64,000 nucleotides of DNA, from positions 15,128,001-15,192,000 of the forward strand of contig NC_090340.1 of NCBI RefSeq assembly GCF_035084215.1, read 5' to 3'. Shown piece by piece: positions 11,101 to 55,151 of this stretch. Position numbers and translations under genes: made by a program. Each line of letters starts with the position of its first letter. The first letter of the stretch is position 1. The notes beneath the pieces were generated by a model. That model saw only the letters and a program-made list of their open reading frames with translations. It made no database searches and was not told the DNA's origin. The DNA is from Heptranchias perlo. Its lineage: Eukaryota.

Positions 11101-11107
11101 GTGGGAT

Positions 11108-29799: not shown

Positions 29800-31175
29800 T
29801 AAGTTTTTTTTTATTTCATTCTTGGGATGTCGGCGGTGCTGGCAAGGCCGGCATTTATTGCCCATCCCTAGTTCGCCGTGATAAGGTGATGGTGGGCATT
29901 CCTCTCGTACCGCTGCAGTCTGCAGAGAAGGTACTCCTACGGTGCTGTTAGGCAGGGAGATCCCTGCGAAGATGAAGGCACAACATATATGTCCAAATAG
30001 GGATTTTGTGTGACTTGGAAGGAAACTTGGAGGTGGTGGTGTTCCCATGCACCTGTTGCCATTGTTCTTCTAGATGTAGGAGGTTGCGGTTTTGGAGGTG
30101 CTGACAAAGAAGCCTTGGTGACTTTCTGCAGTGCATCCTGTGGATAATATACACTGCAGCCACATTTACGCCAGTGGTGGGGGGAGTGCATGGGGGAAAA
30201 GGTGCTGATCAAGTGAACTGCTTTATCCTGGAGAGTGTCCAGATTCTTCACTGTAGTTCCAGTAGCACCCATCCAGGCAAGTGGACCGTATTCCATCGCA
30301 TTCCTGACTTGTGCCTTGTAGGTGGTGGAGATTTTTTGGGGAGTCAAGATGTGAGCCACTAAACGCAGAATACCCATCCTCTGAACTGTTTTAACAGCCA
30401 AGGCATTTATGTGGCTGTTCCAATTGAGTTTTTGGTCAATGGTGACTCTCAGTATGTTGATGGTGAGGGATTCGATGATGGTACTGCAATGGGATGTCAT
30501 GAGATGGTTTTTAGGCTCTCTCTTGTTGGAGATGGTGATTTCCCGGCACATATGTGGGGCGAATGTTACTTGACACTTGTCAACCCAAGTCTGGATGTTG
30601 TTGAGGTCTTGCTGCTTTCGAGCATGAATTGCTTCATTTTATGAGGAATTGCGAATGGAGCAGAATACTGTGCAATCATCATTGAGCAGCACCATTTCTG
30701 AACTTATGATAGATGGAAGGTCATTAATGAAGCAGCTGAAAATAGTTGGGCCTGGGTCACTGCCCTGAGTAACTCCTGCAGCGATATTCTGGGCTCCAAT
30801 AACCATAATCACCTTCCCTTTTGTCAGATATGATTCCAGGCACTGGAGAGCTTTCTCCCTGATTCCCATTGACTTCAGTTTTACTCGGGTTCCTTGCTGC
30901 TTTGATGTCAAGGGCAATCTCTCTCACACTACCTCTGGAATTCAGCGCTTGTGTCCATGTTTGCACTAAGGACATAATTACTCTGGAGCCGAGTGGTCCT
31001 GCACAACACAAACTGAATATCAGTGAGTAGGTTATTGGTAAGTAAATACCACTCAAAGCAGTGAAGCCGAGTCCTTCCATCACTTTGCTGATGATTAAGA
31101 ATAGGTTGATAGGGCAGTAATTGGCCCGTTTGGATTTGCCCTGTTTTTTGTGGACAGGACATACCTGGGCAAATT
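29800..31175 (-). mobile_element. Second LINE family, older copy
   Basis: AQVCPVHKKQGKS..ANYCPINL, GVTQGSDPGPTIFSCFINDLP and YKAQVRNAMEY. A further 3'-end-only copy lies at ~31250-31357. Confidence 0.85.
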
Positions 31176-32039
31176 TTATCTTTTCCAAATCAGCCATGTT
31201 TGAGTGCAATTAACAATTGTGCCAAATTAGTTTCCTGTTGCGGGTCTTTTTTATTGCTCGTTCATGGGATATGGGCGTCGCTGGCAAGGCCAGCATTTAT
31301 TGCCCATCCCTAATTGCCCTGGAGAAGATGGTGATGAGACACCTTCTTGAACCGCTCCTCGAAGTTCAATGGAATCTGGGTTGAGACTTCAATTATTTTT
31401 CGTAGTGAGGGAAGAAGAGAGTTTATTAGATCCAGTCTGCGTTGGGGAATGCAAACTGTTGCTAAAGTGTGACTGGAGAGTTTGCTGTTACATTGACGGA
31501 AATGGAAAATAAAATTGGGCGGAGAGCACCCGCTGTGCCTATGTCCCCAGACGAATTGGTTTCGTGTGGTACCTATTTTATTTCTGAGAAGATATTAAAA
31601 GAAAAACTGTGAATGCTGGACTTCTGAAATAAAACAAACAATGCTGGAAATGATCGGCGGTTTTCAGCATCTAAAAATTTTTTAAAAATCATTTGAGGTG
31701 GGACCCTTCGTCAGATGGTTTACGAAGTCAGTACTTCGGGTCTGAACACAGCAGAAAATGGCCAAATGGCTGTGCGTTCAGCAGGGTTTCCCGCTTAAAA
31801 TAGTAAAAAGTGAATGCCTGGTCATTATTAATAAGATCATTCTTACCCTCATTGTTATGGAAGAGTTTATATGTTTTCAAAAACTGGCATTTAATCAGCC
31901 ATTAAATTGATCATCATTTTCTTCATTGGGGAACGGAACTAAATTATTAAAGAGCGTTTATTGATTCGCGATAATTAACTCAAAAAACAGGTTCACCAAA
32001 AATATAATACCTCACAATATACATTAAAATACAGCAGAG

Positions 32040-32494: not shown

Positions 32495-35400
32495 TACAAA
32501 GAATTACATTGAATGTACAGCACAGAAACAGGCCATTCGGCCCACCAGGCCCGTGCCGGTGTTTATGCTCAACACGAGCCTCCTCCCACACGTCTTCATC
32601 TAACCCCATCAACATAGCCTTCTATTCCTTCCTCTCCTATGCGTTTATCCAGCATCCCCTTAAATGCATCCATGCTAGTCGCCTCAACTATTCCTTGTGG
32701 TGGTGAGTTGCACATTTTAACCACTCTCTGGATAAATAAATTTCTCCTGAATTTCCTTTGTAGTTTTCAGTGACTATCTTATATTAATGGCCCCTAAATT
32801 CGGTCTGCCCTGCAAGTGGAAACATCGTTTTAATGTCTACCCTGTTAAAACATGTCATAATCTTAAAGACATCTTTCAGGTCAACCCTCAGTCTTCTCTT
32901 TTCTACAAAAAAAAGTGCACCAGCCTGTTCAATCTTTCCTGATAGGTATAACCTCTCAGTTCTGGTAGCATCCTAGTAAATCTTTTTTGCACCTTCTACA
33001 GTGCCTCTGCATCCATTTCTAATATGGAGACCAGAACTGTTCACAATCATCCAAGTGTGGTCTAATCAAGGTTCTATACAAGTTTAACATAACTTCCCTG
33101 CTTTTCAACTCTATTCCTCTAGAAATGAAATCTGGCACTTTGTTCACTTTTTTTATGGCCTTGCTAACCTGCATCGGCACTTTTAGTGATGTGTGTACCT
33201 GTACCTACAGATGCCGCTGCACCTGTGCCCCATTTAGACTTATTTTCCAAGGAACATGTAGTCTCCTTATTCTTCCTACCAAAATGTACAATCTCACACT
33301 TACATATATTGAAATTCATTTGGCAATTACACACCGATTCAGAAAGTTTATTAATATCTTGATGAATTTTGTCACAGTCCTCAATATTAACTATACCCCC
33401 CAATTTGGTTTCATTGGCAAATTCTGAAATCGTACTGCCAGTTCTTGAGTCTAAGTCATTTATGAAAATGGTGAACAACAGTGATCCCAGCACTGATCCT
33501 TATGGAACACCACTTCCCAACTTTTGCAAGTCTGAATAACTAACTTTAAACCCTACACTCTGTTTTCTTTTATGTAGCCATCTTGCTATCCATTCGGCAA
33601 CTTGTCCCCGACTCTACATAGTTTGAACTTAGTCATGAGTCCACAATGTGGTACCTTATCAAAGGTCTTTTAAAAATCCAAATACTTTACATCTACTAAA
33701 TTACCCTGGATAACCCTTTCTGTTACTTCTTCAAAGAATTCAATAATATTGATTAAACATGACCTTCCCTTTTGAAATCCCGTGCTGAATATTCTTTATT
33801 ATATTTTCAGTTTTTGGATGTTTTTCTATTACATATTTGAGTAAGGATTCCATTATCTTTCCTACCACTGACGTTACGCTAACTGGCCTATAGTTCCCTG
33901 GATTGTTCTATCTCCGGTTTTAAATATCGGAATCATGTTAGCTGCCCACCAGTCTTCTGGCATTATTCCTTTTTCTAATGATTATATATATATATATATG
34001 TGTGTAATAGCGCCTCCGCTGTCTCTTCCTTAACTTCGTTTAACAGGCACGGATGCAATTCCAGGGTTTAACCACGGGATAAACCAAGGATTTAACCTCT
34101 CTAAGCTTGATTAGTTGATCAATTATCTGCCCCTTTCCATCTTAAATGTCTTTACATCTGTTTTGATCTCTTCTTCTAATGTTATGCCCATTATGCTAGT
34201 CTCCCTGGTAAATACTGAGGCAAAGTAATTATTTAATATTTGTGCTATTTTGCTGTCATTACGTGAGTTTATCGTGTGTATCCCTCAGTGGTCCTCTCCC
34301 TATCCTGATTTTCTTTCGTTATTTATGTTTCTGCAGAATACTTTACTGTTTCTTTTTAGGTTCCTTGATAATCTGATTTCCTAGTTTCTCTTTGCCTTCC
34401 TAATTGTTTTTTTTAACTTCTTACATAACCTTTTCTTGATCTCTTTTGTCATCCTCTCCTTTGTTGTCTATGTACTTAGTGTATGCCTTTCCCTTTAGTT
34501 TCAATTTTACACTTATTTCTTTATTCATCCATGATGTTTCATTATTGGCTAGTTTGTTCTGGATTTTAGTTGGATATATTTCTCCTGGACATTATTGATC
34601 GCGCTTTCAATGTTTCCCACTGCTGTTCTATTTCTTTATTTGTCAGTGAAATTTTGGAGTTATTTTTCCCTCGTTCCATTCTCATCCCTGTTAAAATTAA
34701 CTTTTTTCCAATTCATTGCTTTGGTCTTTGTCTTACTTATGTCCTTCTCAATCTTTATCTTAAAACTTATTATGTTGTGATCACGATTGCCGAGATGTTC
34801 CCCTATGCTGACTTCTCTTATCTGTTCTGGTTCACTTCCCATTATTGGATCCAACAGTGCTTTGTCTCTTGTTGTAAGAAAGCATTCCTGCGCGTATTGT
34901 AAAAACTCAATTCCCTGCACCCCTTTACCTACCTCTGTTTGCCAGTTTATTTGGGGGAAGTTAAAATCTCTCACGATTATTATTCTATGTCTTTTACTCA
35001 TTTCACATATTTGCTGACATGTTTCTTCCTCCACCTCCTTTCCACCATTAGGTGGTCTATAGTATACCCATGTTAGCACGATCAATCCCTTCTCATCATT
35101 TATTTCGAACGATATGGATTATGTTTTTATCCTTCTCTTATTTATGTCCCTTTTCTTTAACTGCTATTAAATCACATGTAATCAGTGCAGCTGCTCCATC
35201 TACCTTTCTTCCTTCCCTTTCCTTTCTGATGATGTTATAACCTGTAACATTTCGTTGCCAGTCCTGTTCTTTGTGTAGCCATGTTTTAGTTATTCTTACT
35301 ACACCTGGTTCCTCACTAGGATTTATTGCCTCCAATTCCCCAGTTTATTTTAGACGCTGTGTACATTGCTGTATTTTACTTTATTTTTAACAGTCCATTT

Positions 35401-36250
35401 ATACTTCAGTTTTAGAACTGTATTTATTCCTTGACCGTTTATGTTATCTTTACTCCTTACCCTGGTCTGACATTTACACTGATCTCCTCTTTTTTTATCG
35501 TTAGGCTTTCGTTATTGCTACCAGATTCCACCCCCCGCCCCCCCCCCCCCCCCGCCATCTTGCTAATTTAAAGCCTTAATAACCGCCCTATTTATCCTTT
35601 CCACTGGCCCTCTGATCTCACTCCAGTCCTTCCTGTCCCAGTACTGGTGCCAGTGTCCCATGAAATGGAACCCCCATTCCCACACCGCTCTTTCAGCCAT
35701 ACTTTTACCTTTCTGATCTGCCTATCCATATGCCAATTATTACGTGGTTCAGGTAGCAATCCTGAGATTACTACCCGTAAGATCCTGCTTTTTAATTTAG
35801 TTCCATGCTTCTGATATTCCTTTCGCAGGACCTCATCCTTGATCTGCGTTATGTCATTTTTGACGACATGGACCACGACGACTGATCCTCCCTTTCCCTT
35901 TCCAAGTTCCTTCCAGTTGCTCGGAGATGTGCTTTACCTTTGCACCAGTTAGGCAACACACCCTCCTGGACTCTTGTTCATGACTGCAGAGCAAATCATC
36001 TATCCCCCGCCTTATTGAATCCCCTCTGAATTCAACATTTCCGTTCTGCTCCACCCCGCCCCCGCCCCCCCGCCCCCACACCAATCTTCTTGGACTGCCT
36101 CATGCTCTACAGTGCCACGGTTAGCATTCTGGGCATCCTCCCTGCAGCCTTAATCCTGATCCTCACAGGTATCAAGTACCTCGTAGATAGGACTCGTATC
36201 TCTGACACCTCCTTCTCTACCTCTCCTAGGTCTCCACTGCCCTGCTGACT
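32495..36250 (-). mobile_element. Near full-length degraded CR1 LINE (AT-rich subfamily)
   Basis: ORF1 remnants (GDSIRRGID, VVISGLLPEP), APE (YYRPPN, DFNFPQINW) and RT (FINDLD..FANETKLGG). Confidence 0.9.
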
Positions 36251-36503
36251 AACAGTCATACACTCCCCTTCTTGCACCTATGCTTTCCTCTGAGCTGTGA
36301 CTATTCTGGAGAAAATTATTTAGATATTCGTCCCCCTCCCTTACGTGTCAGAGTGTGTCTAACTCGCAGTCCAGCCAAAGTTAGATGTAAAGATTGGAGG
36401 AACTTGGGATTTTCAGCGTGGACAAGGCACCTGAGGGATGATCTTGCAGAGATGTATGATAGTTAAAGATATGAGAACGGTAGATCGGGAAAATTGCTTT
36501 AAA

Positions 36504-37229
36504 TTAAATTGCAGAGTTTATCAAAGGGCCACAGGTAAACTTAAAACTGGTATCATACTATCATAGCAGATACAACACATGAGGAGGCCATTCGGCCCAT
36601 CGTGCCTGTACCGATTCTTTGAAAGAGCTTTCCAATTAGTCCCATTCCCCTGCTCTTTCCCCATAGCCCTGTAAATCTTTTGCCTTAAAGTATTAATCCA
36701 ATTCCATTTTGGATGTTACATTTGAATCTGCTTCCAACATCCTTTCATGTCGTGCATTCCAGATCATTACAACTCGCTGCGTTAAAAAAATGTTTCCTCA
36801 TGTCGCCTCTAGCTCTTATGCCGATCACCTTGAGCCTGCGCCCTTTGGTTACCCAACCTTCTTCCACTGAAAACAATTTCTGCTTGTTTACTTTGTCAAA
36901 ACTGTTCATGGTTTTGAACACCTCGATCAAATCTCCTCTTAACCTTTTCTGTTCTAAAGAGAACAATCCCAGCTTCTCCAGCCTCTCCACATAACTGAAG
37001 TCCCTCATCCCTGGCACCATTCTAGTAAATCTCTTCTACAACCTCTCTCAGGCCTTGACATCCTTAAATTGCAGAGTTTATCAAAGGGCCACAGGTAAAC
37101 TTAAAACTGGTATCATACTATCATAGCAGATACAACACATGAGGAGGCCATTCGGCCCATCGTGCCTGTACCGATTCTTTGAAAGAGCTTTCCAATTAGT
37201 CCCATTCCCCTGCTCTTTCCCCATAGCCC
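36504..37229 (+). repeat. Exact 166-bp direct duplication (36504-36669 = 37064-37229)
   Basis: Identical text from ttaaattgcagag to ccccatagccc at an offset of 560. Confidence 0.95.
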
Positions 37230-38037: not shown

Positions 38038-38099
38038 CTAAGGATATGTTCTCGTGGAATTATGAGCAGCAGAGGCAGAGATTGCCAACCGTCCTTTAC
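38038..38099 (-). CDS. Gene B candidate terminal exon: GKGRLAISASAAHNSTRTYP* (short tail, no ITIM)
   Basis: Acceptor ttttatttttaattgtcag|GTAAAG. Phase 1 matches the TM exon, and the start resembles cag|GTAAAC of the paralogous cytoplasmic exons. An alternative acceptor at 39553 would end the protein at SSIEG*. Confidence 0.5.
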
Positions 38100-38206
38100 C
38101 TGACAATTAAAAATAAAATTCAGAACTGTGTTTTTAAACAATGTAACTACTTTGATAATTTATTCTATTTTTCATCGACATGCGATGCCCACCTGTGCAT
38201 GTCAGC

Positions 38207-38364
38207 ATCAATATGATTAGACTCATAGGCACACTCACCATTGCACCAATTTCATTAGACTCAGAGATACATTCACCACTGTATCAATATCATTAAACTC
38301 AGAGGAATACTCACCACTTTATCAATATCATTAGAATCACAGCCACACTCCCACTGCATCAATA
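38207..38364 (+). repeat. Minisatellite, about 4.2 copies of a 38-bp unit
   Basis: Unit approximately atcaatatcattagactcagaggcacactcaccactgc. Confidence 0.85.
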
Positions 38365-39059
38365 GCAAACTATTATTCCATTAGAGGAACGTTCTTCAAT
38401 TATATCCTCTCATTGTAATTCGACAATAATTATAAAAGTAATCTTACAATAAATCAGTGTTGGACTAAGACAAACTTTCCCCAGTGCTAAATAAATATGC
38501 CAACATCTCAGGATTTCAAAAATATTAGGATGCAAGACTTACATTTTTCAACTCACACGCGCCCCCAACCCACCCGTTCTTGGGGGTTAAAATTACCCAC
38601 CATGGTCTCAGTTCCAGTCGCAGTTGAAACGCTAAAACTGGCCTGGGCGTCCAGGGAGAGGAAGAGGGCAATTAGCATGAATTCCTGCTTCTGACCGTTA
38701 TCCAGAAGCCACTGCGGAAACATTCCAGTCTCATGAGGACTGAATTGGGCTGGACGATGAGGTGCCCGTCCACATTAATTCTCTCGACCCACACGTGAAC
38801 ATTGGCCACGTTAGGGGAAGGTATGGAGGGCTGTGAAGGCTGTGGACATCCCTTGAGAAGGGAACAAAAGAGGAGAAACTCGCGAAGCAACCACACTAAA
38901 GCAGCTCACTCTGAGAGGCATGCATAGCGGATTAAACAACAGTCCTAGAACACTGACACCGCAGTTTTTACAGATGTTAATGCAATATTAACAAAATCAC
39001 TCGGAAAGTGGCGCCTGCGATAGGAATCCTTCAACCCTACATAGAAACCTTGGAAGATA

Positions 39060-39505
39060 AAAGACAGGAGTTGCATTTGTATCGCACCTTTTACGACCAC
39101 AGGACGTTCCAACGAGCTTCACAACCATTGAAGTACCTTTCAAGTGTAGCCATTAATGTAATGTTGGGAAAAGCAGCAGCAAATTCTTTGCGTAGTAAGG
39201 TGCCACAAAGAGCAACGAGATAAATGACCAAATAATCGGTTTTAGTGAAGTGGATGGAGGGATAAAAATTGGTCAGGACACCGGGGAAACTCCCCTACTC
39301 CTCTTCGAAATAGCGTCGCGGGATCTTTTATGTCCACCCGAGAGGGCTGACGGGCCTTGATTTGAGTCTTGTCGGAAAGTCGGTGCATCTGACAGAGGAG
39401 CACTCCCTCAGTACTGCGCTGAAATTTTAGCCTAGATTTGTGCTCAAGTCTCTGGAGTGAGAACTTGAACGCACAACATTCTGACACAGAGCGACGAGCT
39501 ACCAC
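39060..39505 (-). mobile_element. tRNA-derived SINE (SacSINE1/Deu-domain-like)
   Basis: ttgcatttgtatcgcaccttt...ggtcaggacaccggggaaactcccctactcctcttcgaaatag...gaacttgaacgcacaacattctgac. Confidence 0.7.
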
Positions 39506-39765
39506 AAGGATCAAAACTGCATCCGATGTTCAGCGTTTGCGACTTGAATTATCCTGTAACAAACTGAATTAAATATGAAAATTATTGTGCTAAAGGTATC
39601 GGTTTTCCATGTTGTCTGCAATTTGGTACCAAAGCGTTTTAATCAGCAATTTTAAATTACATAAGAAACAGTTGATTAAAGCACAATTCTCATCTCCATA
39701 CCGCCAATCTTATCTGTGTATAAGCTTTGAAAATGTTTTCCAGAATTAATAAAGCGTTCTCTTAC

Positions 39766-39879
39766 CTTCAATGGAAGACATTTTTACGTGGTCCACAATA
39801 ATACCCGTCAGTGCAAGAATTACCAAGAAAGCCAGGAAAAGCCGAACAAACATGAGGAGCGAGATGCTGAAACTGTGAC
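39766..39879 (-). CDS. Gene B transmembrane exon: GHSFSISLLMFVRLFLAFLVILALTGIIVDHVKMSSIE (Arg-containing TM)
   Basis: Acceptor ctaatcctacaccgtag| and donor ATTGAAG|gtaaga. The exon is 114 nt, phase 1-1, and encodes a hydrophobic stretch with an Arg codon at 39842-39844. It is absent from the ORF track. Confidence 0.85.
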
Positions 39880-41093
39880 CTACGGTGTAGGATTAGAATC
39901 AAGATATAAAACTGTTGTATATAAGTATTATCGAATGGAAGCAACAATGATTGGTTTATACAGAGGAATGGGGTCCATTAAATGCCTAGTTTAAACCGAT
40001 CTCTATGGGGGTCGATTTGAACTTGCCTAAATTGGCGTTCACCACCTCAAAATGGGCTCGGAAAACTGACCACCTTGTTAACGCCAAGCATGGCGCCTTC
40101 CACTTTAAGGGATGGCCTATTGCTGGGATCAAGCACCTGTTTGTTTCAGGCAGTCGGCTCCCGTTCATATCCAAATCGGGGTTCTATGGTGTACATCCGA
40201 CCTCGATTGTCATTTTAGGATAGAACTGGTGCGCCCTGCACTATCTGGCCAGTTTTACGAGAGATTGTTGATTAAGAGGCCAAGACCAGACAAGTTTTAA
40301 ATTATTTTTGTGTGTCCAGGAAGAGCAGGAGTGCCCCTCTGGACCCCATACAACATGATCTGGGCCACTACAACCTTCGGTCCACACTCCGAGATCGTAA
40401 CGCTCCGATTTAGCATGCTGCCTACTGGCAGGTCTCGGCCGCCCTGCGCGGTGCATCAACGTCAAGAATCCTGATTTTCCCTAAAATAGCCTGGGGTTGA
40501 CTCCCCTCATGGGGGTCTGGATCTCACCGGCACAGGGGATAAGTGCCAAATTTTCTCCTGAACTGCCATTGCGACTACTCCTTAATTTTACTCTAAGATC
40601 TGCAGGGAGAGAAATTGTTCCGAGCCCATGACCATAATGATAGCTAGAATTGATTTAGAAGCAATGCGACATGCCTCACCAATCTACAAGAACCTGAGGA
40701 GAGAAGCAGCACAGTAGATGAAGGCCATCCAGGTAGTAGTTCACTTATATTTTTGAAAGATACGGAAAAAGGTTCTGCATGTGAGGCTTCTGAAGGAAAT
40801 TCAGGCTCATGAAATTCAGGTAGAATTGGAAATTGATAAATGGACAAATCGTTTCGTTTCCTGTCTGGGGAACAGTAGAGTTCTACTGGTCCATTCTAGG
40901 TTCTGTGCTTTGAAGTCGATTAATGAACAATATTGATGTGTCACTTCTAGTAATACTCCTAGATGTGTTGATGGTGTCAATGTATGGATAGGTGAGAAGT
41001 TGGTTAATAATATTCAAATACATCTGGGTCATCGAGGAAATGCTCTTGAAAGATGTTGGCGGCAGTTTGACGCACAATCTGTTGCAATCTTAC

Positions 41094-41387
41094 CTTTAAA
41101 GGTGTAGCTGACACCGGCGGGCACCACAAGAGAGACATGAGATACCAAACAGGTATAAACAACCCCGCTCCGGGCAGGCTGTACATCTTCCAAAAAAGTG
41201 GAAACCTCATATAGTCCTTTGGCGGTCCTGTTTTTCACCGTTTCTATTCCAGTCTGAATTTCGACACCATCTCTTCGCCAGGAGATTCCTAAATGCTCCG
41301 GGTAAAAGGCAGCCGTTTTACACTCGAGTTTCAGAGAAGCCGATGAAATCCCTTCAACAGGAGCGATTTCCAGGGGGGTTGGGGGAA
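41094..41387 (-). CDS. Gene B Ig C1-set domain exon
   Basis: Acceptor cttttctgttaaag| and donor TTTAAAG|gtaaga. Open 294 nt: VPPTPLEI...LKLECKTAAFYPEHLGISWRRDG...GLYEVSTFL...YTCLVSHVSLVVP, with the C1 hallmarks FYP and YTCxVxH. Confidence 0.92.
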
Positions 41388-42330
41388 CTTTAACAGAAAA
41401 GAGTTGTTAGTATTAGTCTCTGTATATTTATTACTGTATAATTTGGTAATATCTCAATCTTACCTGAAACTATAAATGCATGGGAGCAGATTTATCATTT
41501 TCTATCACAGTTCGTACATGATTATTACAGTCGAATAGCCAAATTTCACTAAGCACATTCACGGGGACGAAACAACGGGAAAGTGAATTTTCTATTGCCG
41601 TTAGTTATTCGTTTTAAGGTAGAGTACATATCATGAGCAAGTGTTTGCAATTTCGTAAATAGTCGTCCTGTACATTAATATACCATGGTGCATGTGAAAG
41701 CTCGGTTTGGAATCTCAAGGCTGCATTGTTATGAAAAACCGTTTGCTCTGCCTGGGTGAGATTCTCCGACACTGGCCCAGTGAGATAACACACTGTAATT
41801 AGGATTTGGGGAACTCATGAAAATTATTTCTGCAGGGCACAGGCTGACACCCAACCACACGATATTCTTTTTCCGAAATAAAATCCAGAATCTTACATTT
41901 TTAAAAAAAATCTGGAGATAAATTAAAGCATTTCGAATTTGAGGGAGCAGTTGATTAATTTTTAATCATTATTTTAAGCATTTGATATTGAGCCACGAAC
42001 ATTTTAACAATGAAAACGTGAGCTGACATACATCCAAGCAATTAAAACATCAGTGCCATAAAATATGGTACAAATATTATGATTGACCCGTGCAATACCC
42101 TTTATTCCACATCATTGCTCAGTCGTGCTCCTTGAAACCACCACAGAAGTTATGTCCTGGATAACTAAACGGAAGAAAATCGATCTCTTCTGCCTCTATT
42201 CCCAGGGCCCTCCTAATTCAATGCAAAATCTTGTGGCAAAGTTCTACCTTCCCCACATTACAAAATGCAGATCCTATTCGCCCAGTGAAAATATGTCGAT
42301 GATTACTTCGAGAGCAAGTCAAGACAATTT

Positions 42331-42505
42331 GGGGGACAAACTCGTCCTGGGTTGGTAGTTCACAGCGGGCGATAGCGAATTGGCAGCCCGTTTTACACTC
42401 AGCTCGATTAACTTCAATGGAGAAGAAAACCGGGCGGAATGTAAAACGGACTGCCGATTAGTTATCGCCTGTAATGCGCTACCGCGCAAGTCAGATTTAT
42501 ACCCC
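42331..42505. mobile_element. Palindromic MITE (~175 bp) in the V-C1 intron of gene B
   Basis: Arms gcgatagcgaattggcagcccgttttaca and tgtaaaacggactgccgattagttatcgc, with GGGG...CCCC termini. Confidence 0.7.
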
Positions 42506-43299
42506 AATACCACTTTGCTGTGAACAATGCCAATGGAATTCTTCTAGGTAAACACTGTGAAGATTTCACCTCTAGCATTAATCCCAAAAAACATATTTTA
42601 GGATCCTCACCAATATTTAGACCCCCGCTTAGGCTATGGCATCAAGCACAGACCCCCAGAATGGTGAGATCTTTGGGCACTATCTCAAGATCTGAAGAAG
42701 GGTGCTGTGTTCTGAGTCAGAGCTTAAACAACTGCCTTCTGATGATTAGTCCAACATAGCCGTTCGATGTGAGGTATAACAGAGAAGATACTTCAGCCGA
42801 GTCAACCTTACATCCAAACTATTGGATGTTTTAGACCACTTTCCAGAGCTTTGGAGTTCTGTAAATTACATTGTTCCCTTCTCTATGGAAACAATTTGAA
42901 TTTTACCTCCTTTAGTTAGTAGAGTGAGAATTATGTTTACTAACTCTCCAAGTGTTTATTCTGAAAAAATCCCCGTGACCCAAGCTTATGTCATCTTTCC
43001 AGTTGGTGAGCCAGAGCCCATAGGAAGGACAGCCTCACTGGGTTTTCTCTCTTTTGGCTGAAGCATGGCTTATAAACTGCCCTCACATCACTGTGAGGGT
43101 TTCATCCGGCAAGGATGCATCAAACGCCATTTTTCATGTGGGTGTTTATTGATTAGTATCTCTAGCATTAGTATGAATATGGAATCGAAGATGAATTCCT
43201 GGTTCATTCTTCATTTCGGAGATGTCTTGTTCTGTGAGGATGATTCGAGTATGATCCGAGACCACTTTTTGGTCAATACTTGGACTATGTCATGACCTA

Positions 43300-44560
43300 T
43301 CTCCTCTGACACCCAAAAGATTTTATTTTTTAATGCAACCTGTGGCATTAGGAATACTAGGAATATAATCCCATGTACTGGGTTGGTATATCCTCATAAT
43401 ATCCGCCAGGCCCATCTCACTGCTAAATATAGAAATTTTCCCTTCGACAACAACAGCAGATCTGAAGCAAGATTAAAATTAACACCTTTTATAATTGACA
43501 GTTTTGGTAACTCTCCTTTGCACACTATTCGGGTATTGTGTCTGCCCATTATTAGGGACAAATACATTAACCATAATTAATCTAACATTACAATATATCT
43601 GCCCTCCAGTCCTTCGGTGTTCCATTATAAATGTACTCGACTTATGAATTAATATTACCACTATAAATTTCCTCAAATAAAAAAGGTCAATGTATTTACT
43701 TCACGAAGGTCTTCTTGGATTTTGAAGACCCTTTCTCATCAAAGTGGATCCGCTGTTGGAAGGCTACTCCCATCTTTAATCGGCTTAAATATTGCAAAGG
43801 TTTAACGCAGTTCAGTGAATTTTGGATTCCCTTCACATTCCAGGTGACCAGCTTAATACGGCTACTACTGATCACCTGTGTTTTAAATTTTAAATCCTTG
43901 ACTTGCATTCCCTTGACCCACCTCCAGTTACCTTAAACCTGAAAGCAACCTGTAGTCCCTAGGAGAAATAAAATGCATGTTGATTGTTCATTTACCGATT
44001 TCGCGCTACCAGCAGGAATTCTCGTCTGGCTGCTTTGCAAATTGAGAGATTGCGGGCAGTAGCATGAACTCGGAAAATTCACTGTAAAGCAATAAGGGAA
44101 ATTCTATCAAACTGTATCAGACGCTGCTGCACCTCATTGATGTCGGGGAAGTTCCTTAACTGAATACTTTCCGTACTTCAGTCGCCGTTCTTTCTTGTTG
44201 CCTCAATGATCTTAGGTTTGTCTTGGAATCTGAGCGTTTTGAAAATGATTGTTCTTGGGGATTTGCGTGTTATAGCAGGAGCCAGGACCCCCACCATTTC
44301 CATCTTTGCAGATTCTGATCCCACCCGAAGCTCTGATTAGATATCTTGAAGTTAACCTATGGTAATCTTCTCTTCCACCACTCTGGAAGATTAACCAGTT
44401 GAAGATTATTATTCTTGGAATGAATTTTCCAATCCCCTTTTTGAATTATCAACTGCTGCCGGTATTTTCCTTCAGCACATCAATCTCTTTCAAGACCAAC
44501 TCTCATGAATATTCTGCCTCTAACAGCCTTTCCTCCAGCTTGCAATCTATTTTCAGTCAA
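43300..44560 (-). mobile_element. Degraded L1-clade LINE (ORF1 and APE N-terminus) in the V-C1 intron of gene B
   Basis: IKLVTWNVKGIQN (L1 APE start); LENHSKNNNLQLVNLPE and PRTIIFKTLRFQDK (L1 ORF1). Confidence 0.7.
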
Positions 44561-45123
44561 TTTCTTTCTGAGAAAGGATATATTTTGCTAGGCCCCACTC
44601 TCGCTTTTATTTATGAAATTTGTGTGCGTGTGGGTGTTTATCGCCCTGATCCTCGTTTTAGCACAAAATCATTTGAAGATTCGACCCCACTCCCCGCCAA
44701 AGAGCAGCGTTACGAATCGACCATTAGCAAAGTGCAGGCAGTTGGAGTATTATTACCTGAAAATAATTATAATTTATAAATTACTCCGCTTTGAATCAAT
44801 TTTATTATAATAATATCACATTTCACGAGTCTGGTGCGATGACTGCATGTACTCGTATACGGGGCATACAACAGGGGCTAACTGTCCTCCCTTATCTGAT
44901 TATATTCATTATTATATTATATCCCATTCTGTTTCAACGAGATTACATTCTGCATTTAAAATGCGTATTTAAAGTATGATATAAAATTCGGTACTTAATA
45001 CACATATAAAAACACAAATGTGAAAGTGCTGCAGATTCTATTAAAGTGGTTGTCCATCCCTTAATTTTTTTGAGTTTTAAAGATAGCTAAAACTCTCCCA
45101 CTCCCCTGTACAATGACACTTAC

Positions 45124-45429
45124 CGTACACAGTAATCAGGGAGCCAGCTCCATCTCCAATAGATTTTTCCTGATGTTTTACTTTACAGTAATACATTCCG
45201 GTGTCTTCGATATTCACATTCACAACATCAAAGGAACCACTTCCCTTTTTGACATTGAATTGCTTTCTGTTGTCTGGTTCCAGGAACTTATTCTCGCCCT
45301 GTCTCCACCAAACAACATCGGGAGCATCTTGAAATAGTGGAAAAGTGCAGAACAAGGAAACATTTGCACCTCTGGCAACATTCACGTGTTTCGGGAATTG
45401 ATCCACTTTGCTCGAAGTTACTTCGACGT
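45124..45429 (-). CDS. Gene B Ig V-type domain exon with germline-joined J-like strand
   Basis: Acceptor ttattttttgatag| and donor GTGTACG|gtaagt. Open 306 nt: VDQFP...NVSLFC...VVWWRQG...EDTGMYYC...GDGAGSLITVY. Confidence 0.93.
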
Positions 45430-45643
45430 CTATCAAAAAATAAACAAGTAAACTGATACAATAGTGTGTGTACTTTCAGGGGAAGAAACAAAAATTACGA
45501 CTTAGAAATTGAAAAACAAGAAAATTAGCAAAATTAATAAAATAATGAGAAAGACGAAAAAAAGAAATGTGCATAAAATATGACGATTTTTTAAACACAA
45601 GGTTTTTTCGATAAGCATAAAGCTGTAAGATAAACAAACACAC

Positions 45644-45698
45644 CTGTGTAAATAATTCCGAGTAAAGATATGCACAAAAGTGCGGAGCTCACCGCCAT
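45644..45698 (-). CDS. Gene B leader exon: MAVSSALLCISLLGIIYT
   Basis: agaATGG Kozak-like start, hydrophobic signal peptide and donor ACAG|gtgtgt. The exon is 55 nt, phase 1, the same size as the gene C leader. Confidence 0.85.
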
Positions 45699-45776
45699 TC
45701 TGAGTGACGAACATTAAACTGGCCAGAAGCTGCAAGGAACCTCCAAGCTCCTGGTCCTTTGGAAGCCACGGGTTTG

Positions 45777-46493: not shown

Positions 46494-46682
46494 TGTCCTT
46501 TGTTTAGTCTGTAAAGCCAATGCTTAGAAATATTGTTAATTGGTCGTTTTGCCAGTTTGTGGACTGCTGCTCAAAGCAGACATCAGAAGAACACACAAGT
46601 AGCCTTACAAACAACTCACGGCCAAAGTCAGCACAAGCATCTGCCCTATGCTGTCGTAGGAATGTTGGTGTTACGCTGGTGA
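46494..46682 (-). pseudogene. Duplicated fragment of the last intron and first codons of the terminal ITIM exon
   Basis: Closely matches 50112-50300 (compare ORFs 46520..46777 and 50138..50347). The acceptor is intact and is followed by TKQRT*. Confidence 0.85.
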
Positions 46683-46689: not shown

Positions 46690-47240
46690 GTCAAGCAGAC
46701 TTCAATCATTTAAAGTTAATATTCTGTATGTCATTGTAAATAAAAGAATGTTTTTAAATAAAATGTCAAAGAATTAATTGAATTAAATTAAAGAGACAGA
46801 AGGGAAAAGTAAAAACAAATTAACGTTTTAGTTTTAAAAGTTGTTTTTAATGACCATAAACTAATAAAATAAGGAGTAATATGCGTCTCCACGTTTTGAT
46901 AAGATAATGTTTTTTTGTTTGGCAGTCATTAAAGCATACCGCGCTGTTAAAACTTAGTTTAGACTTGGTATTTTAAGTGTACCTGTTCGATGGCATAATT
47001 AGTTACTTTCCAGCTGGGCTGATAAGCAAGTTGGCGCTTTTTCAGTGATTGATTGGCTTGCAGGTGCGATGGCGCATTCATTCCAAGCTGTCATATCGCC
47101 TGCGAAGCACTGGGAGCAAAATCAGGATTTCCGCGTTTGAATACGCATATGCAAACGTGGGAACTTGCTCCTTCAATTCGCTACGAAAAACGGAGGGAGC
47201 TGTTGAGCTCCTCCGTTATTTCGGGAGCGATTTCTGGCCC
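46690..47240. mobile_element. Probable non-autonomous DNA-transposon fragment
   Basis: AT-rich body ending in gatttctggccc, similar to the Harbinger-like termini elsewhere in the window. Confidence 0.35.
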
Positions 47241-47684: not shown

Positions 47685-49035
47685 TTGCATTTAGCAAAGT
47701 GATGGAAGGTGTCGTCGACAGTGCTATCAAGCGGCACTTACTCACCAATAACCTGCTCACCGATGCTCAGTTAGGGTTCCGCCAGGACCACTCAGCTCCA
47801 GACCTCATAACAGCCTTGCTCCAAACATAGATACAAGAGCTGAATTCCAGAGGTGAGGCGAGAGTGACTGCCCATGATATCAAGGCAGCATTTCACCAAG
47901 TGTGGCACCAAGGAGCCCTAGTAAAATTGAAGTCAATGGGAATCAGGGGGGGATTCTCTCAATTGGCTGGAGTCATACATAGCTCAAAGGAAGATGGTAG
48001 TGGTTGTTGGAGGCCAATCATCTCAGCCCCAGGACATTGCTGCAGGAGTTCCTCAGGACAGTGTCCTAGGCCAAACAGCTTCAGCTGCTTCATCAACGAC
48101 CTTCCCTCCATCATAAGGTCAGAACTGGGGATGTGTGCTGATGATTGCACAGTGTTCAGTTCCATTTGCAACCCCTCAGATAATGAAGCACTCCATACCC
48201 ACATGCAGCAAAACCTGGCAAACATCCATGCTTGGGCTGATAATTAGCAAGTAACATTCGCGCCAGACAAGTGCCAGGCAATAACCATCTCCAACAAGAG
48301 AACGTCTAACCACCTCTCCCTCCCATTCAATGACATTACCATCGCTGAATCCCCCACCATCAACATTCTCGGGGTCACCATTGACCAGAAACTTAACTGG
48401 ACCAGCCACATAAATATTGTGGCTACAAGAGCTGATAAGAGACTGGGTATTCTGTGACGAGTGACTCACCTCCTGATACCCAAAGCCTTTCCACCATCTA
48501 CAAGGCACAAGTCAGGAGTGTGATGGAATACTCTCAACTTGCCAGGATAAGTGCAGCTCCAACAACAATCAAGAAGCTCGACACCATCTGGAACAAAGGA
48601 GCCCGCTTGATTGGCACTCATCCACCATCTTAAACATTCACTTCCTCCACCACCAGCGCACCGTGGCTGCAGTGTGTACCATCTACAAGATGCACTGCAT
48701 CAACTCGCCAAGGTTCCTTTGATAGCTCCTCCCAAACCCGCGACCTCTACCACCTAGAAGGACAAGAGCAGCAGGTGCATGGGAACTCCACCACCTGCAC
48801 ATTCCCCTCCAAGTCACACATAATCCTGACTAGGAAATATATCGCCCTTCCTTCATGGTCGCTGGGTCAAAATGCTGGAACTCCCGACCTAACAGCACTG
48901 TGAGAGAACCTTCACCACACGGACTGCAGCGGTTCAAGAAGGCGGCTCACCACCACCTTCTCAAGGACAATTAGGGATGGGCAATAAATGCTGGCCTTGC
49001 CAGCGACGCCCACATTCCATGAATGATTTTTTTAA
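47685..49035 (+). mobile_element. Second LINE family, 5'-truncated copy
   Basis: DIKAAFHQVWHQG and FINDLPSIIRSELGMCADDC. 3' end gggcaataaatgctggccttgccagcgacgccc. Confidence 0.88.
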
Positions 49036-49958: not shown

Positions 49959-52900
49959 CTATTTGAATCTTCCTTCGGAGTAGGCAATCTCGGTTACTCT
50001 GTTTTTTTTGTCTGCAGCTGGGCATACTCTGCTTCTTTCGTCATTTTTGCATTTCCCCGTTTTCTCTGAGCCAGTCGCTGCTAGAGTCACGTACGTCAGC
50101 TTGTCACGAGCTGTCCTTTGTTTGATCTGTAAAGCCAATGTTTAGAAATATTGTTAATTGGTCGTTTTGCCAGTTTGTGGACTGCTGCTCAAAGCAGTCA
50201 TCAGAAGAACATGCAAACAGCCTTAGATACAACACAGGGCCAAAGTCAGCACCGACATATGCCCTACACTATCGCATGAATGCTAGTGTTACACTGGTGA
50301 TCTATGTTTCCCTGATGTGTTACTCAGCCCTACCTGAAAGTACATAATCCTCTCCTCTTCACGTTTACCTCCTGGAGTTTTCCTGTCTCTGCTCAAATCT
50401 AATGCAGTATGATGCAGGGTCTCGGCCTCTGCTCCCTGCATGGACCAGAAAGCAAATGTTTGGTTATGTGGTCTGTTCATTGCCTTCACCAGCTTACGTA
50501 CTGCTAATCAAACATTGAACAGAATTACCTGGGCTAGAGGTCCAGTGCACAAATCATAATTAATATATTGGCTTAAGTGCGAATATTAAGGCCGGCGAGT
50601 GCTGTGGTCAATATGACTAATATTTAAACCTGTCAATATTCTCTCTGCAAAACTGTGTTACAGAAATATTTGAGTAAGAATAAAGTTTTTTTTTTCAAAT
50701 ACAAAGACTAGATGAATCTATAAACAATTATTACCTCGGTACATTTTCAACGAAACTGGCAGTTTTCTTTTCCGCTATTTAACCATTTTTACCAGCAAAA
50801 CATCGGATGCCAAATACGTTTCTAACCACGATTTGAATGATTCACTAAGACCGGACAAATACTTTTAGTAAATTGACTTAAACTGTTCTGACATGATTAT
50901 GATAAAATCTCTCCATTATAGCAATCTTTCTTCACATTTGAACCCTCTAGAGAGGACGAATGAATGAACGTGTCAGCTCTTCACCACGGGTCGGTCCCAC
51001 TGCACGTCCCTGTTTACCTGGAAAATAATGAAATTAATGATATTGAAAGATTGAAATATTTACTCAGTTTCCATGTTAGTGATTTCAAAGACATTTCTCG
51101 AGTCCGTGCAAAACCGAACATGATTTTCAATTTCAGATTTTACTGACAGTGTTAGAATCCCTGGCCTTGCAGCGATCCGCAATGGTGTAAAACCATTCCT
51201 CTTCGGAGCCTCACACCGATTCACTCAATCTAGTTGCGCCTCCACAACGGGATGGGTTGATAAGTGATTGTGTGTCAGGCTACATTTAATTTATCACCCT
51301 GCAAAGTGGACATTTCTGTTGCAAATACCCAGCTAATTATTTCCGTTACTACGGAGATTCTATGAGGATTTCTGCGTCTTAAAGTGTATTTGGAACAATC
51401 TGCGCTCCCTGAAAACAGATAACACCGCCTTCAACTGGAAGTCTTAATGGAATTCTCCTTCCCATGTGTTACCCAGAGACTTTCACTAAACGTGGGGTTT
51501 CGGACTAAAATCAAGCTCTTACAGTAGATCTTACTTTCATTATTCTGCAGTCTGCACCGCCTCCCAATGAAGACCATGCGCACCAGAAACTCCAATCCAC
51601 CCACCGCACACCCAGGAGCCCAGAAGTAAAGGGACACATCAATGACACTAGCTGCAAGATTAATAGGAACATTAAGTTATGCCGGGCGTTTGCTAAAAAA
51701 AGGCGTGAAGATCGTTTATTGGTTAAACTATGGTTGTTGCTTTCAGTAACTCTGCAGTACAGAACGCCAATAATGAAGTTTAAATAAAAAATGTTAATTT
51801 TTTTTGGATATAATATTTGAAGTAACTTATTCATCGAATGGACGAGATATCCTGGATTAATCTGCGAAGCGGGCTACCGGTTTCGGGATCTCAAAACACT
51901 GTTTCAGGAAAGTAAGAATGTGAGAGTGATAAATTTCCCTGGACCGAATGGCGTGTTCTTATCCTTTACCTTTCTTATTTATTAACATATGATTTGAAGA
52001 AATCGGAGGGAATTTGGTGACACGCGTTTCTCCGTTCACCGCACGAAATTCTGGATTGCAGCAATCAGCTAAAAATCCCCATTCAATTATCCGCAATGTG
52101 ATTATTAAAGTAAGAATGTCACTGAGTAGTGAAGAAAATCAACGGACGATGTTTTATTGATTAATGTCTGGCGAGGCTAAGAGTTCTTAATAAAATGATG
52201 CATTGAACCGGCTGTACTGTAGCCAGGTTTCGGGCACAGCTTAATTGAGATTTGTGAGACAGGTCCCAATGGAACCCACAGTGGCATGGAGAGGTGTGGG
52301 TTACAAGTTGGACAGAGGGTTAATTTCGGAATTTTGCATTGGAAGTAGCAGAAAGGGGGATCAGGATCGAAACCTCATTGGGAGAAGCCCGAGATCAGAC
52401 AAATTGACTGCAGCTCCTTTTAACAGTCTTCATGCAGGGGTAGCCGGCAATGGTAAAGAATAAAACCATTTTGACGTGGAAACAAAAAAAGTGAAAAATT
52501 ATTAATAGTAAGCAGGAGAGGAAATATAATCGGATACAGAAGATTAACTCCTGTTTATATTTGTTATACGGCAAATAGAGGAATTTGAAGACAAATAGGG
52601 CGTAATTGAGAATATTTGTGTGGCGGACGATATAACACGGATTCACAACACATCGTGTTCAAATATGTTATATATTAAAACAAGAATTCTATGGTTTCGT
52701 TGATATTTCCCATGAACCGCCTTCATGATTATCAAAATGTACAAACTCTACGATGTAGCTCATTGCGAATTTGTAAGTAGCTGGACTGTTGGCCTCGTAC
52801 CTGGGTTAGATTTAATATAGGTAATAACAGCTGGAGTCTCAAGGGTGACATGAGATACCGATCAGGTATATTTGGCGCCACTCGAGACAGGCTGCGTCTC

Positions 52901-55151
52901 TTCCAAAGTGCTGGAAACTTCATACAGCCCCTCAATGATCTGCCGTTTAACGGTGTGTATTCCTATTGCAGTTTCGAAGCCATTTTTATACCAAGTGAGG
53001 GTGACATTCTTCGGATAAACTCAGCCGTTTCACACACAAGAGTCAGAGGCGCAGATGAATTCCATTCAGCTGTCAGAGAGACAATAGTCAGTGGAATTGG
53101 GGCAGTTGCGGAACAGAAAATGAGCAACATCGAGTTATTGGACACCAATGGAAGAAATTAAATATGATTCTGATTTACCTTCGGTCCATTTCATTTTAAC
53201 AACAATATTCCAAAGAAAAGCCTCCTGTCGCTTTAATGTTAGGCACAGCATCTACACACACTTCATCTGTATCTCTCATCGTCGCCGGCATCTGTTCAAT
53301 TTTACCTTCGCTCTCGAGTTCAAGACATTGAGATATTCAACAGACACGTCGCAACGATTGTTTTTTAATGTCTGCGTTTCATAATCCAAATAATTAAATA
53401 AATAAACCCTGAGGGAAAGATGTCATGCCCAGTCCCTCCATGTTTGGTACTCACAGATAGACAGTGACGACTAAGCTGCACAATGTCGATGATAAAACGA
53501 GGGGATTAGTAGGTATCGGACAGATCTCACAGCCGAGGCATGAAATTGGTGAAAGAAACTTTATTCGGTCGAAACTTAGGCGGTTTCAGCAACACAGTTC
53601 CTGCGTATTGTATTTATTGGACGTTAGTGAGGTGACAACGTTGAGAATTGCGAGTTCCAGTTTTTTGAGTGAATCCGATGATCAACAGTTAGTCGCACGC
53701 TGGCTTTCAAATCCGTGACGCCAACGAGCCAATAATTATATGAGAATTAATTTCGGGAATGTTAAACCCCAGAGACAGCAGTGGGGGCAGAGAGAGCTTC
53801 CAATTATATTCTCTGGAATTTAGAAGAATGTGAGGTGATCTCATTGAAACATATAAGATTTTAGGATGGCTTGACAGGGTAGATGCTGAGAAGATGTTTC
53901 TCCTGGATGGAGAGTCTAGAACTAGGGGACATAGTCTCAGGTTAAGGGATTGGACATTTAGGACTGAGATGAGGAGGAATTTCTTCACTCAGAGGGTAGT
54001 GAATATTTGGAATTCTCTATCCCAGAGTGCTGTGGATGCTCAGTCGTTGAGTATATTCAAGGCTGAGTTAGATAGATTTTTAGATTCTGAGGGGATCAAG
54101 GGTTATGGGATCTGGCGGGAAAGTGGAGTTGAGGTCGATGATCATCCATGATCTTATTGAATGGCGGAGCAGGCTCGAGGGGCCGTATGCCGTTCTCCTG
54201 CTCATATTTCGTATCTTCTTATGTTCTTTTGTTCAAAATAGGCTCAGGGGCGTGTATATGGTGGTTAAGGCTCATTAATATAAACAATGTTCAGTCAGTT
54301 ATATGCTTGAAATTAGTTCCGATTTTCCGCTATCAGACATCTGGTGCATAGATTGTCTTTGGAGCGATAGTCAATTTTTTAATATTGATACTATTTTCAG
54401 CATTCTGCGTATGAAGGGTTATATTGTATCTCTAATTAGCATTTCTATACAGAGGACACGAACATTCAACTTAACTTTCTCGCAAAATGTAATAATATAA
54501 ATCATTATACTGTCAAAATTTGTGCATTAAACAATTTTAAAACATCTCAGTTTGTTGCGTTGGATATGTTTGCCACAGTCCCGTACTCCGGTTTTTCACA
54601 CTCACTATGCACAATTAGATGTGATCCGGTTCCATTTCCTCCAAAGCATCAGTGACACATCACTGCGCAGTGATAGATTCCCGAGTCTTGGAAAGTCGCG
54701 CTCAGCAACTGAAAGAAACCGCTCGCTTTACTTTTCAGACCGAATCGTTTTCTGTCATCGGCACTTGTGCGCAGGTATTCATTCTCACCCTGTTTCCACC
54801 AATACACTCTTACCCAGGGATGGTCTTGAGAGATGGGGAATATGCAGTAGAAGGTGATGTTTCCCCCTTTGGATACATCCGCTTGTTCGGGCGCTTGAGT
54901 CACTCTGAACGAAGTGTGATCCACAGCTGTCAAAAAACATAGTCAAGTAAGGATTAATTTTATTAGATGGGACATGGAGATGGAAGAGAGAAAGAAGAAT
55001 CGATATAGAGGAATTACGGTTCACTAAATTAATATGGAAACTATTTCGGAAGCATTTTATAAATTAAAGTAGCTGCTATATTGAATAAAGAGGTACCTGT
55101 GCAAATAATCCACCGAAGATTCAGGCAAAGAAATGACAAATTCGTCCACAT
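49959..55151 (-). pseudogene. Receptor pseudogene C: leader-VJ-C1-TM-3 cytoplasmic exons (inhibitory-type architecture)
   Basis: Exons: 55097-55151 (MWTNLSFLCLNLRWIICT); 54606-54926 (V, TGA at 54649-54651); 52801-53105 (C1, acceptor AG>AA, 1-nt deletion in FYP, Cys>TGA at 52862-52864); 51535-51651 (TM); 50974-51017 (donor GT>AC); 50334-50435; 49959-50126 (LTYVTL). Confidence 0.92.
53800..54225 (+). mobile_element. CR1 3' fragment in the V-C1 intron of pseudogene C
   Basis: GESRTRGHSLRL...RRNFFTQRVVNIWNSL. Confidence 0.85.

Follow-up and report, generated by a model that had tools for sequence, protein, structure and literature searches.

Mammals, birds and bony fishes are well known to possess germline-encoded receptors of which activating and inhibitory forms exist side by side. 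A lone arginine (Arg) in the transmembrane (TM) helix of a type I protein, combined with a motif-free tail, is the hallmark of receptors that borrow a dimer that carries ITAMs (immunoreceptor tyrosine-based activation motifs). LILRA, NKp46, GPVI and OSCAR are such Arg-TM receptors; they are coupled to FcR-gamma/CD3-zeta and have C2-type ectodomains. In SIRP-beta1 the basic TM residue is lysine (Lys). T-cell receptor (TCR) chains join a variable-joining (V-J) unit to a C1 domain, carry one or more basic TM residues and a very short tail, and signal via CD3/zeta dimers that bear aspartate (Asp). The teleost NITRs and the PRARP of birds and fishes are non-rearranging V-J-like receptors with inhibitory and activating forms, and the NITRs combine their V domain with an I-type domain, not with a C1. 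Here we analyse a stretch of 64,000 nucleotides (nt) from the shark Heptranchias perlo (contig NC_090340.1 of assembly GCF_035084215.1, positions 15,128,001 to 15,192,000 of the forward strand; hereafter the window, with coordinates counted from its first letter). Our focus is gene B, which joins a V and a C1 immunoglobulin (Ig) domain to a TM segment with a single Arg.

The rules by which such receptors assemble with their adaptors are set out in Feng, Call and Wucherpfennig (2006), which we cite for the portions accessible here: assembly depends on the basic residue and on its depth in the membrane, and the flanking TM residues can be replaced by polyleucine. In these portions, partners of FcR-gamma carry their Arg in the helix's N-terminal segment (position 3 in Fc-alpha-RI, with the FcR-gamma Asp at 6), and type I partners of human DAP12, the adaptor of SIRP-beta1, carry Lys nearer the centre (DAP12 Asp at position 9). 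Exchanging Arg and Lys strongly lowers assembly; for example, Lys to Arg cuts the assembly of KIR with DAP12 to 15%. Among shark proteins, UrIg and UrIg2, as described in the accessible part of PMC12227049, resemble gene B in their single-exon VJ unit, split leader, C1 domains and absence of rearrangement. UrIg2 has nine C1-type domains versus one in gene B. That part of the paper describes no paired activating/inhibitory forms, and the terms 'ITIM' (immunoreceptor tyrosine-based inhibitory motif) and 'SIRP' have 0 occurrences in its text. Among the matches listed, our full-text searches turned up neither a description of such receptor pairs in sharks nor a paper that treats a paired V-C1 family of sharks or its Arg-TM members.

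We consider it fairly probable that gene B, intact and transcribed, represents the activating type within a paired V(J)-C1 receptor family and that its Arg pairs with an ITAM adaptor, somewhat more likely one of the CD3-zeta/FcR-gamma type than DAP12. The gene consists of five exons on the minus strand (Table 1; 55+306+294+114+62 = 831 nt) that encode 276 residues (18+1+101+1+97+1+37+1+19) without an internal stop. All four introns have a GT donor and an AG acceptor on the coding strand, with pyrimidine-rich tracts ahead of the acceptors; the donor of the leader exon is the GT at 45643-45642. Every junction is in phase 1, with the split codons, read by eye, being GAC (D), GTT (V), GGT (G) and GGT (G). 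Inspection of the exon ends, exon-by-exon translation and Pfam thus confirm what an earlier note on this DNA had proposed, namely an intact gene with a VJ-C1 ectodomain, canonical GT-AG sites and phase 1 joints.

Transcript evidence covers most of this structure. Contigs of three sequencing runs (X1-X3) were aligned to 39760-45759 (6,000 letters), where 10, 2 and 1 contigs were placed, respectively. When words were sampled from the 7.66-kb gene, a fraction of 0.10 occurred in run X1, which is close to the exonic share (831/7661 nt). A 349-nt X1 contig joins 39879 to 41094 (C1 to TM; CT..AC on the plus strand) and a 267-nt contig joins 41387 to 45124 (V to C1), both with 0 letters other than those of the window. 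In addition, the loose ends of two X1 contigs before 39762 match 38066-38095 at 29/30 letters. Because TTAC stands both at 38096-38099 and at 39762-39765, the aligned part begins at 39762 and the last joint is 38099 to 39766. X1 thus shows exons 2-5 of gene B joined in the proposed way, with the TM exon retained and not skipped, skipping being an outcome that the earlier note had considered. The GT-AG joints also indicate that X1 derives from complementary DNA. A third X1 joint, 41384 to 45268 with three extra letters, comes from a contig that departs from the window at 2 letters, and one of these replaces glutamine (Gln) by Arg; we take it for a paralogue or an allele. The single-letter differences between X1 and the window are T>G at 45338 (synonymous, the only form seen), T>C at 45300 (Gln to Arg, one contig) and G>A at 38075 (alanine to valine, one of the two loose ends); they are alleles or close paralogues such as P0181.

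Gene B is already predicted in the NCBI annotation under another name. The H. perlo model P0174 (287 residues), called 'immunoglobulin lambda-1 light chain-like' and retrieved by a search with a catshark relative, is identical letter for letter to exons 2-5 from its residue 31 onwards. Its first 30 residues, MTAWNECAIAPASQSITEKAPTCLSAQLE, fall 1.3 kb upstream of the predicted leader (tblastn, 29/30 identical). Between this first exon and the gene B leader sits a 189-bp fragment (46494-46682, minus strand) that is 87% identical to 50112-50300, a tail region of the inhibitory-type neighbour gene A, and 81% identical to 878-1014. Since the start of P0174 looks unlike a signal peptide and the gene A tail fragment is close by, the start has the appearance of a chimeric or read-through artefact, and 47005-47094 is probably not the productive first exon. 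The predicted leader, MAVSSALLCISLLGIIYT, aligns in register (8-17 to 8-17) with leaders at the N termini of family proteins in Heterodontus, Callorhinchus, Chiloscyllium and Scyliorhinus, with the pattern LC.SL.GII(Y/F); among the short matches listed, 13/19 start within one residue of the same N-terminal position. By sequence, the leader exon is homologous to these and intact, and it is the predicted first exon of gene B.

The ectodomain consists of two recognizable Ig domains. The V exon matches the Pfam V-set at 3.7e-10 (40.4 bits, cut-off 26), with I-set close at 1.6e-9, and its J-like G strand, IGDGAGSLITV, is contiguous with V in a single germline exon (45124-45429) spliced directly to C1. 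The C1 exon matches C1-set at 4.6e-9 (36.9 bits, cut-off 21) and contains the motifs LECKTAAFYPE, ISW and VYTCLVSH. In a sequence search of the PDB, its top match was shark UrIg2, at 7.7e-15 for three domains combined and 25.1 bits for the best of them, followed at similar single-domain scores by Ig CH1, C-mu, SIRP-gamma domain 3 (8.6e-9) and MHC II beta2; no TCR constant domain stands among its 60 best matches. On this comparison the gene B C1 is a generic C1 domain without a clear nearest family. An AlphaFold2 model of P0174, based on a 44-sequence family alignment, has a mean predicted local distance difference test score of 85.5 and shows two beta-sandwich domains and one long helix (233-275). 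In its V domain hardly any residues separate strand C from the strand that follows, and the C'-C'' hairpin is missing, which fits the near-tie between V-set and I-set in Pfam. The best Foldseek matches of the model are antibody light chains (E ~1e-15), with TM-scores (a measure of structural similarity) of 0.3-0.45, low because the angle between the domains differs. The gene B ectodomain is built like an antibody light chain, with the single C1 placed almost directly on the membrane and a stalk without a free cysteine (Cys) for an interchain bond. Two routes to a family identity were set aside as not decisive: structure, for which Foldseek returned antibody light chains only, and a protein atlas, which returned generic V-C1/V-C2 proteins (kappa-like, a SIRP-alpha fragment, tapasin, CD80, butyrophilin).

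The TM string LLMFVRLFLAFLVILALTGIIVDH contains Arg (CGG, 39844-39842), Asp (GAC, 39793-39791) and histidine (His; CAC, 39790-39788). Between 5 and 9 hydrophobic residues precede the Arg and 16 follow it, after which come Asp-His-Val-Lys. The tail, HVKMSSIEGKGRLAISASAAHNSTRTYP, is ~27 residues long and holds no ITIM or ITAM. A single TM Arg and a short tail without either motif are directly visible in the translations of the TM and last exons, in agreement with the earlier note. These features recur in other sharks, in a minority of family members whose homologous TM exon has the pattern R-x16-[D/E]-H. A phmmer search with the 37-residue TM exon matched 14/186 local proteins (plus one spurious second stretch), in which the aligned exons carry Arg in 12/14 and Gln in 2/14, Asp or glutamate at +17 in 14/14, and His at +18 in 13/14 (tyrosine in 1/14). 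A pattern scan added P0069/P0160 and P0148, and a later profile search added two Scyliorhinus proteins that keep Arg and His and have valine in place of the acid. With isoforms and 90% clusters counted once, the searches yield 15 loci with such R-type TM segments, spread over 9 species of shark (Heptranchias, two Scyliorhinus, Carcharodon, Mustelus, Cetorhinus, Heterodontus and two Chiloscyllium). They were not found in the ray or Callorhinchus proteins fetched, a small sample that does not prove their absence there. The gene B TM exon is 85% identical to that of its paralogue P0017. Conservation extends to the last exon, whose pattern G-K-x-R-L-x-I-S-x-x-x-x-(H/Q)-N recurs in P0181 (H. perlo), in P0169 (S. 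canicula) and in P0172 (Heterodontus).

The family of gene B is a large one of cartilaginous fishes. Searched against 1.84 billion representative proteins, the C1 exon matched 487 at E <= 1e-3, 160 at <= 1e-10 and 8 at <= 1e-30. The best matches are of two kinds: long multi-C1 proteins, and many of 200-420 residues with one match at ~122-217 and the layout leader, V, C1, tail, including many V-C1-TM proteins of 250-400 residues. Members come from sharks, rays and the chimaera Callorhinchus, share 40-72% C1 identity with gene B and follow the consensus GNGTGSxLxV ... VYTCLVSH. Gene B itself has the V domain with the J-like G-x-G-x-x-L-x-V strand, the one C1 with Y-x-C-x-V-x-H and the phase 1 exons of this family. 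Database names of the members are diverse ('tyrosine-protein phosphatase non-receptor type substrate 1-like', 'SIRP-alpha-like', 'SIRP beta-1 isoform 3-like', 'NCR3LG1-like', 'tapasin-related', 'MHC class II beta-like', 'TCR beta-like' and 'lambda light chain-like'). A sturgeon protein, P0200 (Acipenser oxyrinchus), has a V-C1-TM layout and a tyrosine-motif tail and matches the shark profile at E 1e-16; by its sequence it may be a bony-fish relative of the family.

Most of the members fetched have a plain TM segment (...GCAGGGLAFLLLLIIIGK...) and long tails with repeated ITIM-like (L/V)-x-Y-A-x-(L/V) motifs. Activating-type and inhibitory-type members can share nearly the same ectodomain. For example, the S. 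canicula proteins P0169, with an Arg TM, and P0171, with a plain TM, agree at 212/255 aligned positions; ~202/217 of the first positions match (~93% over the ectodomain), and the divergence starts exactly at the TM segment. We placed these pairs on a maximum-likelihood tree of the C1 domain (quick search, 98 rows, 99 columns), supported only by the Shimodaira-Hasegawa-like approximate likelihood ratio test (SH-aLRT). Proteins longer than 520 residues, those with a C1 match count other than one, matches that spanned under 80 positions of the query and repeated copies of a segment were excluded. The R-type label requires 8 changes on this tree, at least 6 of them forced by well-supported branches; shuffled labels require 13.3 on average, and 0/500 shuffles were as low as the observed value. 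R-type and inhibitory members are sisters with SH-aLRT supports of 97 (P0034/P0033), 99 (P0017/P0167) and 99 (P0169 + P0153 with P0171). Gene B groups with P0181, and the two adjoin inhibitory Heterodontus genes (support 83). The few columns leave the deep branching order of this tree unresolved. One homologous TM exon on several ectodomain lineages, each with inhibitory twins, is the signature of paired receptor families.

On the mechanism we propose, the buried Arg of gene B could not remain in the membrane alone and would pair with the two aspartates of an ITAM adaptor dimer. Surface expression would thereby become possible, and binding of a presumed ligand would then give an activating signal, opposed by that of the inhibitory relatives with near-identical ectodomains. 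The residue guides the choice of adaptor: Arg, in a protein of type I, makes the CD3-zeta/FcR-gamma type somewhat likelier than DAP12. The side chain would thus point to a gamma/zeta-type partner, and the depth of the Arg (~6-10) lies between the two adaptor classes, that is, between the Asp depths of FcR-gamma (6) and DAP12 (9). Like Fc-alpha-RI and its class, gene B is of type I, with a short motif-free tail and a single Arg towards the outer side of the TM span, deeper than in Fc-alpha-RI. As to the adaptors in fishes, bamboo shark T cells express cd247 (CD3-zeta), which serves there as a marker gene, and a 2014 survey places the origin of the common gamma chain at the bony fishes, each according to the part of the source available.

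The earlier note had assigned the TM segment to the N-terminal-Arg class of LILRA and Fc-alpha-RI. The Arg and the short tail without motifs support that assignment, and the position fits it in part only, the Arg being deeper (~6-10) than the position 3 of Fc-alpha-RI. The closer claim, that the segment lines up with human NKp46, found no support: a search with TM and tail (E <= 10, 21 word-sharing candidates) matched only 3 H. perlo paralogues, with no detectable TM kinship to other receptors. Moreover, NKp46/NCR1 has two C2-type Ig domains, in contrast to the V-set and C1-set of gene B in Pfam. The flanking TM residues being exchangeable (Feng et al. 2006), a likeness of motif is neither needed for function nor evidence of kinship. 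The same note called the combination of V-C1 ectodomain and Arg TM unusual, which holds against mammalian innate receptors, although in sharks it is a conserved feature of the family at the 15 loci listed above. The TCR alpha chain, too, combines V-C1 with a basic residue in its TM segment.

Several observations weigh against our reading. The Arg lies ~6-10 residues into a hydrophobic stretch of 22-26, deeper than the position 3 of Fc-alpha-RI. Gln replaces the Arg at 2 loci and valine the acidic residue at 2 others. The RNA status of X1 had only been guessed beforehand, and its contigs carry neither expression levels nor transcript ends. The remaining points concern the 5' end and bear on the proposal that gene B is open and yet encodes no surface receptor, its transcripts beginning at signal-less upstream exons (read-through or chimeric within a tandem array), so that the locus would be a young, still-open pseudogene or give a non-coding transcript. 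We regard this as improbable. Contig depth is nil on 45560-45759, so that the predicted leader exon is uncovered in X1, and the sole contig at the V acceptor (45301-45429) continues into 29 foreign letters with an in-frame TGA. These letters are absent from the window (at <= 3 mismatches and in a short-word blastn search). That contig carries 2 other letters, and its depth of 12.9 is about the sum of the two contigs feeding into it; it may derive from a paralogue or an allele, and the X1 contigs in general are short and shallow (depth 5-13). The NCBI model skips the predicted leader exon in favour of a first exon without signal-peptide character, adjoining the inhibitory tail fragment, and the neighbouring gene A is a pseudogene. 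In gene B, however, none of the five exons contains an internal stop and every splice site is intact, the leader lines up in register with those of the family, and the last exon and TM motif are kept across shark orders.

A different partner for the Arg is also conceivable. If the family were the shark counterpart of SIRP, the Arg would dock to a DAP12-type adaptor and not to CD3-zeta/FcR-gamma, which we judge unlikely. The resemblance to SIRP is considerable: both are paired, with an N-terminal V that ends in a J-like strand followed by a C1-set domain, with several tyrosine motifs in the inhibitory members and with a basic TM residue and short tail in the activating ones. Many shark members are named 'tyrosine-protein phosphatase non-receptor type substrate 1-like' or 'SIRP beta-1-like', and SIRP-gamma domain 3 is among the C1 matches (8.6e-9). 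Yet the C1 exon scores about equally against Ig CH1, C-mu, MHC II beta2 and SIRP, so the names reflect best hits and not demonstrated orthology. The SIRP ectodomain is V-C1-C1, whereas gene B has one C1 exon, not two, and its spliced contigs pass straight from V into C1 and from C1 into TM. In place of the Lys of SIRP-beta1, gene B has Arg, with [D/E]-H 17-18 residues further on. In favour of DAP12, the Arg at ~6-10 is near its Asp at position 9, and rodent DAP12 accepts Arg in Ly49; the human type I DAP12 partners listed in the accessible portions of Feng et al. (2006) nevertheless all carry Lys, and the drop of KIR-DAP12 assembly to 15% on Lys-to-Arg exchange bears on the same point. Less likely again, and in our view very improbable, is that Arg and [D/E]-H serve another purpose, either a TCR-like heterodimer with another chain of the family or control of retention and degradation that yields mainly a soluble or decoy form. 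The ectodomain does resemble an Ig light chain, which is a pairing chain (Foldseek E ~1e-15), though the TM-scores are low (0.3-0.45), the stalk lacks a free Cys for an interchain bond and no partner chain with an acidic TM residue was found among the family members fetched. In the Heterodontus model P0172 the TM exon is skipped, which predicts a secreted product. At the cytosolic edge, acid and His are conserved at fixed spacing, although no known adaptor rule needs them; as the Asp lies 17 residues from the Arg, at that edge, Arg-Asp pairing within one helix is impossible.

A bolder reading extends the comparison to antigen receptors. The R-x16-[D/E]-H exon might be an ancient shark docking module for ITAM adaptors, found on at least six ectodomain lineages because it moved repeatedly or was kept while the ectodomains homogenised, and the chain a non-rearranging relative of TCR chains that signals via CD3-zeta. 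We think this quite unlikely. TCR chains do share with gene B a V-J unit plus C1, a basic TM residue and a short tail; gene B differs in having V-J in one germline exon, no stalk Cys and a single Arg rather than Arg/Lys. In Ig and TCR genes, RAG joins separate germline V and J segments at RSSs, whereas in gene B V and the J strand are contiguous, without rearrangement.

The alternative 3' ends of gene B were also considered. A stretch at 38945-39048, which has a good acceptor and shares 81% identity with the last exon of P0017, an H. perlo paralogue model, could by sequence serve as an alternative last exon; as the main one, the letters of the loose contig ends and the models P0174, P0181, P0169 and P0172 favour 38038-38099. 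Splicing onward to an inhibitory tail, which the earlier note had named as a possibility, finds no exon in the window: tblastn with the tails of family proteins P0001-P0164 (<= 520 residues, with the C1 motif and a tail of >= 30 residues) placed ITIM or plain-TM alternatives on the minus strand only in gene A (49962-51670) and none below 38909, that is, none downstream of gene B on its strand.

The window contains further remnants of the family (Table 1). Gene A (49962-54924, minus strand), upstream of gene B on the same strand, is an inhibitory-type paralogue and a pseudogene. The plus-strand tail exons at 692-1176 are part of a family gene whose 5' exons would precede the start of the window, and the isolated tail exon at 18625-18807 is probably a relic. 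Long open reading frames at 6000-13500, 28000-31300, 33100-37100, 47800-48500 and 57000-61600 resemble fragments of non-long-terminal-repeat reverse transcriptase/endonuclease, judged by eye from the list of open reading frames. An exact 166-bp duplicate occupies 36504-36669 and 37064-37229.

Table 1. Exons of gene B, its alternative exons and neighbouring family exons in the window
Feature	Position	Strand	Details
Gene B leader exon (predicted signal peptide)	45644-45698	minus	55 nt; MAVSSALLCISLLGIIYT +1 nt; phase 1; ATG 45698-45696
Gene B V-type Ig exon	45124-45429	minus	306 nt; translation VEVTSS...GDGAGSLITVY
Gene B C1-set Ig exon	41094-41387	minus	294 nt; translation PPTPLEIAPVEG...VYTCLVSHVSLVVPAGVSYTFK
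Gene B TM exon	39766-39879	minus	114 nt; translation HSFSISLLMFVRLFLAFLVILALTGIIVDHVKMSSIE
Gene B last coding exon	38038-38099	minus	62 nt; (G)KGRLAISASAAHNSTRTYP then TAG at 38040-38038
Gene B possible alternative last exon	38945-39048	minus	(G)FYVGLKDSYRRRHFPSDFVNIALTSVKTAVSVF + stop; 34 open codons; acceptor AG 39050-39049; frame read by eye
P0174 first exon	47005-47094	minus	MTAWNECAIAPASQSITEKAPTCLSAQLE; first 30 residues; tblastn 29/30 identical; 1.3 kb upstream of predicted leader
Gene A V exon	54607-54924	minus	in-frame stop
Gene A C1 exon	52817-53100	minus	frameshift and stop
Gene A plain TM exon	51530-51652	minus	90% identical to H. perlo P0037
Gene A tail exons	50974-51018, 50331-50441, 49962-50141	minus	tyrosines or frame lost
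Two open ITIM-type tail exons	692-817, 925-1176	plus	...PYAALDM...AVYAQV; ...LTYATLEL...TEYAELQ...VVYTEA
Isolated ITIM-type tail exon	18625-18807	plus	in-frame stop; ...MTYTAVVL...TEYSEMKTIH*

For the databases, the practical consequence is a correction to P0174, whose name, 'immunoglobulin lambda-1 light chain-like', is misleading and whose first exon is probably wrong. For the biology of the family, the locus raises the questions of what the paired ectodomains recognise and how VJ-C1 receptors are related to UrIg, SIRP and the antigen receptors. Were the TM exon indeed an ancient docking module, the adaptor-coupling half of antigen-receptor architecture would exist in germline-encoded shark receptors and may predate or parallel the RAG-based ones. 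Intact and transcribed, gene B is a concrete shark example of what would be the activating type; its conserved TM signature is open to mutation, and it so raises the question of which ITAM adaptors sharks use and whether Arg-Asp docking of the FcR-gamma/zeta type existed in the oldest jawed vertebrates.

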